Assembly: GCF_031769215.1 (NCBI RefSeq)
Contig: NW_026782295.1
Coordinates: 310,001 to 374,000 of the forward strand
Length of the DNA: 64,000 bases
Origin: Ylistrum balloti
Taxonomy: Eukaryota
Direction of reading: 5' to 3'
In this document: piece after piece, positions 48,432 through 51,500 of the stretch
Layout of the letters: each line of letters starts with the position of its first letter
How positions within the stretch are numbered: position 1 is the first letter of the stretch
Position numbers and translations under genes: made by a program
Notes under the pieces: generated by a model
Told to the model about the DNA's origin: nothing
Database searches by the model: none
Seen by the model: the letters and a program-made list of their open reading frames with translations, nothing else

Positions 48432-48596
48432 TTAGTTTGTAGAGTGTGCAAATCCGACCTTGTTGTTTCCAAGGTCAAATTCGCTGTAGAATTGTCCGAG
48501 GAAAACATCTCCAAGAATCCATAAGGGTCCGAGAGGGGCGGGAACATCTATACCAGTAAACCCACTGAGGCAGATAGTCTGGCCTTGCTGGGAAAC
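48432..48596 (-). CDS. CTSD: Cathepsin D distal alternative terminal exon 9b (54 aa)
   Basis: Acceptor CTGCTTCGTTAG|GTT, phase 0. Encodes [60 protein letters not shown] on the minus strand near 47884-47889. Confidence 0.9.
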
Positions 48597-51500
48597 CTAA
48601 CGAAGCAGATTAAGGTAGACACTGTTAGAATAAAACTATATCGGGTTAGCATGCTTCGGGAATCAGTATGTTGTGAATTATTTTAGGATTTTTCTCAGAA
48701 ATAATATTAACTGAAGAAAGCTGAAATAAAATGTTAATAGAACAGAATTGAAAGAAAGGAAAAAAACATTTTATACAAAGAAATGTCAATAAAAGAGAAA
48801 AAAACATGAAAGCTAAGTATTAGTAAAGCTATCAACCACCACCTGAAATAAACGACATGAAGGTGCTAGTATTCTACCAAACAGTGTGCGGGTACTAACA
48901 ATCTACCTTAATGATACTGATCATACATACAAGTAGTGATAGGACTACACAAAGAATGCCAAAACATGCATTAAAAAACATTATAATCCGAAATTATATT
49001 TGAAGTATTTTCCATGCAATCCACAACATCTAGTCAAAATAAGTAAAAGTGACACCTTGTCAACTAAAAAAGCAATCATTGTAAATTAATGTCATAAGTG
49101 AAGGATTATAATTCATTTAGATTAAATTCTTCTTTCCACATATGTATTTATCCGATTATATTCATTTATTTAAAGCCTAAGATAACAGATTTATCTATGC
49201 TGCAGACAGTGTCCTAAATCTGATGGACAAGTAAAGGCCTGTATGTTACTTGAACTAGAAACCTGTTTATCGTTCAGAGATACCTTCACTGCCCTTAGAG
49301 ACATTGAACCTGACCAAGTCCACAGATAAACTGTTATCACTACAGTCCTTCATTCACACACAAATACACTTTATAAGCACTTTACTGCTGTACAAACGGA
49401 AATGTTTCAAGTTTCACTATATCAAAGTGTGTCCATCATAGCTTAGTCAATTTAATCCACACTAAAAATACACAAATTTGAGGACTGGTGGTTTTATAAG
49501 ACAATTTTATTTTATATTTGGGACAGAAATCACGGGTGAGATCGTGGGACAACTTCATTACACAATTCATGACTTAATCAGTAAATTAGCCAGATGATCA
49601 ACATCGCTAAATATTAACCATATTAGTGTAGAATGGATTCCACATGCAGACTAGATTGATAAGGACTGGCTGATTTTTTAATGCCACTATGATATTGCAT
49701 TAATGTTTTCCTGTCATGGTTTCTCATGCCAATTAAGAATTAAAAGCAAATGACCATTCTACACTGCCACTATTATGCAATACATGTACCTGACTGCAAG
49801 GTGAAGTGGAAGAAATGTGACAAATATGATCTTCACTTTTGACCATGTTACTAATGAAATTCCCAACAACATCTCAAAAATACATGGAATATCAAAATTA
49901 CAAAATACAAAAACAATTAGCACTTAGTATAGCACAGATCTGCAATATTTCCACTTTCCTTTCTAATTGTCTCTTTCCAACTGTAAAGTTAAAATTGTGA
50001 GTCCAACTATATTAAAGTATGTGTTTCCAGAAATATTTAGTTCCTTAAAAATATCATTCTGAGTACAGAACTTGGGTCTCATATCTATATCACCTATGAA
50101 ACCATAATCATTTACATCACATAAATCATAACATTTTTTTATATTTTAACTAAAAATATTGAGATTTCATAATGAGATGAACTTGGATCTAACAGTTGTT
50201 TTGTAGTATCATGTCATTACTATTCAGATCTTTATTCAATATTGGTAAATAAATCCAATATATTGTTGATGACAATTAGGTCCAAGGTTACATGCACAAG
50301 GTTTGTCATATACTGCTTATATGTCCAATTAGGTACTGGATCAATAGAAATATATCCTGAAGACTTGTAGCAGCCTTCACTGCTAAATCTTTTATGTATC
50401 TAACAGTAAATATTTCTTTTGTTGATAAAAAAGTAATTTCCCAGAATTAAAATCTGGTAGATTACTGAGTAAACCTTCAAGTTATCACATCATTAAGTGC
50501 TTCTTTTTTCCATTTCATGTCAAGACTGATGTTCTAGAAAATCAACCAAGAAAAACAAAATTGTATTTCAAGTGCTCTAAATGTTGGTAAAAGATTCACG
50601 TAAGCCAACAGCCAGTTTACTGCTTCACAAAGACAGGAATTAATGTAAGAATATTGCTTGTTTTCCAATAATTTTTATACTCCGTTTGTTTTTTCCATTG
50701 TTCTTGCAATATGTTGATGTTGGAAATAAAACATTGTTTACAAATTTCATCTGAAATATGATAGCTTTTTCCAATGAAGTTATTTAACATCAAAATGAGA
50801 AACACTGTGTTTCCATAGTGATAGTTGTTTGATTGCAATTTAATGAGTGTTGGCTACAGTAAAGGGTAGGAGAGGTGTGCATCCTTAGTTCATAGGTATG
50901 TTCCAGTTGTGGACATTCTGGTCCCTCCAATCAAAATCAGGATGTCTGAAATCAGAATTAAGTGCTGTGCTACTGCTTCCAGACTTTGCAAATCCAACCC
51001 GATTATTAGCCAAGTCAAATTCAGAGTAGAATCTGCCAAGGAAGACATCCCCGAGAATCCACAAAGGACCAAGGGGAGCTGGGATATCCATTCCTATAAA
51101 TCCACTGAGACATACTGTTTCACCCATCTCTGTTACCTGTAATAAGGAAACATTTCAATACAGAACAGACATTCACATAATTTACACATATCCTGATATG
51201 TTACAAGGTCCCCAAAACTATCACTGCAGTCGCATCCAATAAATGTTAGTTAGGGACTTACAATACTACACTGAATCCTGAAACTTAAAAACCAGTTACT
51301 TAATGTAAAAAATACAATGTAACATCATTCTATATATATGAAGAAAGTTTGTCAATGTAACCTGACAAAAAATAATTGTTTCTGTGAATTACAGTTCACA
51401 TTGTTTTCTTAATACAGAAGCTTGAAGGTCAATCACTATGAAAAATGGTTCTATGCATTACCCCTACAACTACAGTACTCACATTATCCGAGTGTTAACA

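Follow-up and report, generated by a model that had tools for sequence, protein, structure and literature searches.

Cathepsin D is generally regarded as a housekeeping protease with one product. To our knowledge the vertebrate gene (CTSD, peptidase family A1) has a single last exon, and nearly all of the 120 vertebrate cathepsin D proteins returned by a profile search are about 396 amino acids (aa) long. Tandem exons that are used alternatively are familiar from other genes, e.g. the mutually exclusive exons of ion channels and tropomyosin, as are alternative last exons, e.g. those of calcitonin/CGRP and of membrane versus secreted IgM. Invertebrate forms of cathepsin D can carry a C-terminal extension, as in the solved chain 9snt_A ('Cathepsin D (A01 family)'), which runs 46 residues past the aligned region. 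Here we analyze a 64,000-nucleotide (nt) stretch of DNA from Ylistrum balloti (NCBI RefSeq assembly GCF_031769215.1, contig NW_026782295.1, positions 310,001 to 374,000; referred to below as the window, with positions counted from its first letter). It contains, on the minus strand, a cathepsin D-type gene in nine-exon form whose shared body (56194-51635) is followed on its 3' side by two homologous terminal exons, 9a and 9b. In the literature searched we found cathepsin D nowhere described with alternative last exons; automatic genome annotations may already list such isoforms.

The predicted product of the gene is a pepsin-like aspartic peptidase (A1) of the cathepsin D type. When spliced, exons 1-8 form an open frame of 342 codons, the translation of which carries both catalytic Asp-Thr-Gly motifs (DTGSS and DTGTS) and the flap tyrosine (YGTGS). 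The two DTG motifs, the flap, the propeptide and the signal peptide are all features that the protein shares with vertebrate CTSD; with the 9b ending it has the same length and aligns end to end, with ∼59% identity over 396 aa, and its last exon aligns gap-free to human cathepsin D. Many vertebrate cathepsin D proteins are 57-61% identical to the predicted product over 376-405 aligned residues, and its best matches among solved structures are human cathepsin D chains. The profile search mentioned above, built from a fish cathepsin D and four exons of the window, matched almost nothing but vertebrate proteins. Unlike vertebrate CTSD, the window gene has a second, diverged last exon that alters residues 287, 289 and 291 (pepsin numbering throughout) and adds a tail. 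The two last exons resemble the tandem alternative exons of other genes, i.e. they are homologous, lie in tandem, agree in phase and would substitute for one another over one segment of the protein. They are unlike those exons in that this segment belongs to a protease catalytic domain and includes substrate-cleft residues, and in that the arrangement is known here from genomic sequence.

The final shared exon, exon 8 (51733-51635, minus strand, placed by reading of its splice sites), ends in phase 0 at the donor CAG/gtaagt. The proximal last exon, 9a (51136-50885, minus strand), has 83 codons plus a stop, encodes Ile287, Met289 and Ile291, and is 29 residues longer than 9b. The distal last exon, 9b (48596-48432, minus strand), has 54 codons plus a stop, encodes Thr287, Ile289 and Val291, and gives the C-terminal length found in vertebrate cathepsin D. 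Both exons are in phase 0 with exon 8, the acceptors being ttattacag/G before 9a and cttcgttag/G before 9b, and the predicted products are 425 aa with 9a and 396 aa with 9b, residues 1-342 being common to both. The C-terminal end of the Pfam Asp profile is matched by 9a (E 3e-11) and by 9b (E 2e-12), in both cases to profile position 314/315, and the resemblance between the two exons is therefore not due to chance. They are identical at 40 of 54 residues and at 110 of 162 nucleotides (68%); of the codons, 17 are the same in both, 23 show synonymous differences only and 14 encode different residues, and within an identical core of 16 residues 12 of the 16 codons differ synonymously. When the whole window was searched on either strand by tblastn with fish cathepsin D, the last exon was found twice and all of the other exons once. 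An initial annotation of the window, made from the sequence alone, had described two homologous phase-0 last exons after exon 8 with acceptors, open frames and stops, with no other cathepsin exon duplicated. We recovered the same translations and splice sites and found no further duplicated exon, recounted both the shared residues and the synonymous core codons identically, and reproduced the isoform lengths from the spliced translation with exon 1 at 56194-56133.

Between 9a and 9b the nonsynonymous divergence (dN) is about 0.16-0.19 and the synonymous divergence (dS) is saturated. Nucleotide likeness between the two regions is confined to the exons, with none in the introns or the downstream flanks. 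The saturated synonymous sites, low dN and dissimilar flanks together indicate that the duplication is old and that both copies have been kept under constraint. They also bear on an explanation that the initial annotation had itself named as a refuting one, i.e. that the duplication is an assembly artefact in which two haplotypes or genes were collapsed into one locus. Sequences that differ at 32% of their nucleotides and have dissimilar flanks cannot be alleles. In addition, contigs from a DNA sequencing run, ∼1% different from the window, cover 48200-50682 and 50684-52900, abut at a bubble (50653-50713) and reproduce the layout with two last exons, and the same layout recurs in unrelated assemblies (described below). 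Although an artefact of this kind is a general possibility, and the DNA run may share a project with the assembly, we consider it extremely improbable. Among the variants listed for these contigs, none falls in 9a or 9b, and those within exons 6 and 8 are third-position changes.

Judged by their position, 9a and 9b can serve only as alternative 3' ends of this one gene, and we think it likely that they are real alternative last exons that give isozymes of 425 and 396 aa. In the mechanism that we propose, the exon 8 donor would be joined to one of two acceptors, i.e. either (i) exon 8 would be joined to 9a and the transcript would end at a nearby poly(A) site, giving the 425-aa protein, or (ii) 9a would be skipped and removed within a longer intron, so that exon 8 would be joined to 9b, giving the 396-aa protein. 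As each last exon carries its own stop, the exon and the 3' end would have to be chosen jointly. In addition, 9a has no convincing internal donor, and the endings would have to be picked by competition between the 9a acceptor with its poly(A) site and skipping to 9b. We infer use of both junctions in this species, with splicing coupled to polyadenylation deciding between them, and a difference in specificity between the two products. As the initial annotation had stated, a poly(A)-type hexamer is present downstream of each last exon (all on the minus strand): ATTAAA at 50844-50839, 41 nt past the 9a stop, AATAAA at 50236-50231, 649 nt past the same stop, and AATAAA at 47889-47884, 543 nt past the 9b stop. 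These hexamers are weak evidence for 3' ends because they are common by chance in AT-rich DNA.

Contigs from other species were found by searching each last exon against large protein collections (short open reading frames (ORFs) on unannotated invertebrate contigs), and by a scan of metagenome contigs. None of the ORFs matched by the single-exon searches came from this species, and the cluster representatives inspected were an ostracod, a horsehair worm, a gecko, a nematode and metagenome proteins, with no mollusc among them. Comparison of gene structures indicates that the layout with two last exons is certainly kept in the species represented by contigs L003 and L033, and probably in the species represented by L030 and L010. 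At the end of L003, a 597-kb contig, exons 5-8 are followed by two tandem last exons, i.e. a proximal one at 9992-10219, whose tail has 25 residues, and a distal one with a short tail at 16806-16970, 6.6 kb beyond the first. Both have good acceptors and are in phase 0, and they have 43 of 51 residues in common, with 25 codons differing only synonymously and dS saturated; the distal exon encodes Thr at exon position 14 (residue 287), like 9b. In L033 a near-full gene (exons 2-8) leads into a pair of last exons, both short-tailed and separated by only 225 nt, which have 42 of 50 residues in common and a dS of about 1.06. These two intact exons (L033:9618-10168) are so close that the acceptor region of the second must contain, or be overlapped by, the 3' end of the first form.

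The nearest relative found, L030, contains exons 7 and 8 and a proximal-type last exon without a tail; L010 contains a distal-type last exon that is identical to 9b at 44 of 50 residues. The two are consecutively numbered contigs of one assembly, and the 91 nt that close L030 reappear, exactly reverse-complemented, as the opening 91 nt of L010. A shared inverted end of this kind is what assemblers yield at inverted repeats, and joining the contigs there puts both last exons on one strand, in the expected order and ∼2 kb apart, so that L030 probably adjoins L010 in that species' genome. The 91-nt inverted repeat (L030:4176-4266, L010:1-91) has internal hairpin symmetry, is probably an element resembling miniature inverted-repeat transposable elements (MITE-like), and has a diverged copy at L030:802-892. 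On the opposite strand of L010, ∼3 kb downstream of the distal exon, lies a terminal exon (3635-3739, minus strand) homologous to one at ∼37980-38118 on the plus strand of the window, and this shared exon of a convergent neighbour indicates that the L010 locus is syntenic with the window locus. In L090 (568 nt, ∼96% identical to L030), from a species close to that of L030 and L010, the end of exon 8 is fused directly to a proximal-type last exon, the 934-nt intron of L030 having been removed; as read from this fusion, L090 represents a spliced product or has been copied from one. The initial 26 nt of L090 are unlike L030 exon 8 and end in an acceptor-like AACAG, and could reflect a chimera, a retrocopy or an alternative upstream junction.

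Comparison of 9b with the distal exon of L010 gave a dN of 0.074 and a dS of 1.45 (ratio about 0.05), and with the distal exon of L003 a dS of 1.36. For 9a, comparison with the proximal exon of L030 gave a dN of 0.21 and a dS of 2.1, and the 9a core compared with the proximal exons of other species gave a dN of 0.14-0.21 with dS saturated or about 2. These values indicate that both last exons are under purifying selection along lineages that include this species, which agrees, as does the divergence within the gene (dN about 0.16 with saturated dS), with the original proposal that both copies are old and selected. An exon that is selected as coding sequence must be translated, and a 54-residue end of an aspartic protease works only when joined to the remainder; this gene is the only such body nearby.

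The divergence of 9b from the syntenic distal exon in L010 leaves little room for a long neutral phase. This counts against the alternative that only 9a, the first acceptor met, is used now and that 9b, disused only recently and not yet decayed, is what remains of an old duplication of the exon or of a tandem gene copy since lost. A number of observations lean towards this alternative, or otherwise weigh against our interpretation. The sole public run holding this stretch is DNA and contains genomic contigs only, so that neither junction is evidenced by transcripts in this species; no spliced junction of exon 8 to a distal exon was found in any near relative, and the exon 8 to 9b junction is thus without RNA support. 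A short exon could remain intact for some time after disuse, and a frame of only 165 nt, as in 9b, might for a while be kept open by chance. The 9b acceptor is a TAG, and its pyrimidine tract has a C>G change at position -6 in the other haplotype or individual. No second last exon was found within 4.6-10 kb downstream of the long-tailed last exons in L004, L005, L008 and L009, which shows that the layout is not a universal one. That L030 and L010 are adjacent is inferred from a 91-nt end that belongs to a repeat family. Finally, approximately unbiased tests of shared versus independent duplications (50-codon alignment; protein, nucleotide and codon models) reject no topology, with p values of 0.13-0.86. 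Among metatranscriptome contigs, no two were found with a common gene body and different last exons. On the other side, 9b keeps all of the family-invariant residues, its product has exactly the vertebrate cathepsin D length of 396 aa, and distal exons are intact in L003 and L033 too. We consider recent disuse of 9b unlikely, and prefer the reading in which both 9a and 9b serve as last exons.

The history of the pair was assessed from several kinds of comparison. In residue-conserved codons, third positions match in 25/37 and 26/44 cases among distal exons, compared with 16/39 to 18/43 between the proximal and distal exons of one species. The three distal exons group together in a nucleotide maximum-likelihood tree, and in a large FastTree analysis 9b and the distal exon of L003 fall in a 16-member clade with support of 0.79. 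Residue 287 is small in the distal exons of three species, and small residues at this position are rare among the 229 last-exon cores that we collected. The amino-acid data slightly favour pairing within species. A single duplication shared by the paired exons of the different species is favoured by the third positions, the nucleotide tree and residue 287, with the approximately unbiased tests rejecting neither this origin nor independent duplications. With either origin, the comparisons indicate that both copies are maintained in several lineages.

When the exons are aligned to pepsin without gaps, their positions 14, 16 and 18 correspond to residues 287, 289 and 291, which are Ile, Met and Ile in 9a, Thr, Ile and Val in 9b, and Met, Met and Ile in human cathepsin D. 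Mutagenesis of human cathepsin D reportedly marks position 287 as dominant for the S2 subsite. Position 287 (exon position 14) differs in all four of the proximal/distal pairs, being hydrophobic in the proximal exons, whereas in three of the four species the distal exon has Thr or Ala there. The initial annotation had claimed that the differing loop lines the substrate cleft, and this is borne out by the tabulation of residues 287, 289 and 291 among the substrate-cleft residues of pepsin-family enzymes (PMC6221303); the neighbouring polyproline loop and the flap jointly form a cover over the active site (PMC8466142). A second claim, that the differences between 9a and 9b cluster in the loop before the polyproline segment, did not hold. 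Only three of the 14 residue differences fall in the loop (exon positions 14, 16 and 18), with five in the first eight residues and six beyond the loop.

A broader asymmetry within the exon was found by dividing it into positions 1-22 and 23-50. Differences within pairs number 29 and 6 in these two parts, compared with 79 and 53 between exons of the same type in different species (Fisher p 0.016, the comparisons being non-independent). The concentration of within-pair differences in positions 1-22 suggests that the alternative exons keep a common C-terminal half, which would pack against the shared body, and vary the half containing the cleft loop. The isozymes would differ in the last strands of the C-terminal lobe, chiefly at residues 287, 289 and 291 next to the polyproline loop, and would probably have different subsite preferences. 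A wider possibility, for and against which we find the evidence about evenly balanced, is that the pair represents an old, conserved isozyme switch in invertebrate cathepsin D, in which terminal exons would exchange cleft residue 287 and the adjoining loop in species distant enough for synonymous sites to be nearly saturated, with a C-terminal extension on one form in some lineages.

After the VGFA motif, 33 residues follow in 9a and 4 in 9b. Like the extended cathepsin D of other invertebrates, 9a is a long form. A conserved C-terminal tail of 19-26 residues is present in 34 distinct invertebrate cathepsin D last exons, with a consensus of about K-S-x(3-6)-Y-F-G-x-P-R-Y-N-x-P-x-H-F-D-D-E-L (L012-L034, L019, L041, L055, L073 and others). 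Many members of this tail family end in DDEL, YDEL, CDEL or FEL, which resemble endoplasmic reticulum-retrieval signals, and some members were found in contigs that look like full-length cDNA. Unlike these, the 9a tail has no match above chance to the conserved family: it scored 0.3 bits against a profile of the 34 tails, a score equalled by 122 of 1000 shuffles, and has no detectable homologue there. The tail of the L003 proximal exon is likewise unrecognised by the 34-tail profile. We considered the 9a tail as an ancient feature and dropped this candidate because the tail is unmatched by the conserved family; it is treated here as lineage-specific, and a role in trafficking or regulation is a matter of speculation.

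The lack of a tail homologue could also be read as support for the converse alternative, i.e. that only 9b is used and that 9a is a non-functional or rare decoy whose 29-residue tail arose when a stop codon was lost; in L030, the nearest relative found, the proximal exon is tail-less. This alternative has to be set against the conservation of the 9a core relative to the proximal exons of other species, described above, and against the acceptor of 9a, which is the more typical of the two (CAG). Moreover, a spliced junction of exon 8 to the proximal exon is found in a relative (L090), and contigs of other invertebrates that resemble full-length cDNA (e.g. L014 and L019) contain long-tailed forms. 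We regard a decoy 9a as quite improbable, more so than a disused 9b, and continue to favour two functional last exons.

The remaining exons of the gene, all on the minus strand, were placed as follows. Exon 1 (56194-56133), with the start codon and signal peptide (21 codons, donor GTAAGA), was by a wide margin the top candidate in a scan for an ATG, a hydrophobic stretch and a phase-matched donor. Exon 2 (55232-55082), encoding the propeptide, was placed by frame translation, splice sites and tblastn with fish cathepsin D. Translation, splice sites and tblastn likewise placed exon 3 (54385-54262), with the first catalytic motif DTGSS, exon 4 (53921-53803), with the flap YGTGS, exon 6 (52763-52641) and exon 7 (52349-52202), with the second catalytic motif DTGTS; exon 5 (53306-53107) was identified by tblastn and by its match to Pfam Asp (E 1e-21). 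Splice sites are standard throughout exons 2-8.

Upstream of the cathepsin D gene, on the same strand, an unbroken frame of 253 codons (60995-60237) with an N-terminal and a C-terminal domain of glutathione S-transferase (GST; Pfam E 2e-20) appears to be an intronless GST gene. Between this frame and the cathepsin D gene lies a tandem repeat (59411-59811) with a 76-nt unit in 5.3 copies and 98% matches. On the other side, ∼4 kb downstream of 9b, a 792-codon ORF with a reverse transcriptase domain (44500-42125, minus strand; Pfam E 4e-37) is likely to be an insertion of a long interspersed nuclear element (LINE) between cathepsin D and its neighbour. That neighbour is the convergent gene whose conserved terminal exon (∼37980-38118, plus strand), in common with L010, carries the motif IMDML...SRQPDL followed by a stop. 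A run of 274 N is present at 6506-6779.

Other duplicated cathepsin D segments were seen among the contigs of other species. In L004 exon 3 (DTGSS) is tandemly doubled (7378-7500 and 7564-7686, within 7378-7686), the copies being 83% and 73% identical to exon 3 of the window gene; they are candidate mutually exclusive exons by their arrangement, and this gene has only one last exon within 10 kb. L024 (1-1138) and L054 (1265-2410), as well as L025, have 1.1-1.4 kb of upstream sequence that is 98% identical, followed by different cassettes of fused exons 8-9, one with Leu287 and a long tail and the other with Tyr287 and a 6-residue tail. Either a recent tandem duplication or an alternative cassette may account for this arrangement.

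Terminal exon duplication thus recurs or persists in the cathepsin D family across invertebrates, and the arrangement has lasted to synonymous saturation. If both endings are used, it is the choice of 3' exon, and not gene duplication, that exchanges the cleft-lining loop of the enzyme, and studies of mollusc annotation and expression would be affected, as pipelines are likely to report only one ending. The two products would also form a natural isozyme pair, identical over 342 residues, in which to study how positions 287-291 set the subsite preference of A1 peptidases. One gene for a lysosomal or digestive protease would then supply two enzymes that differ in subsite preference.

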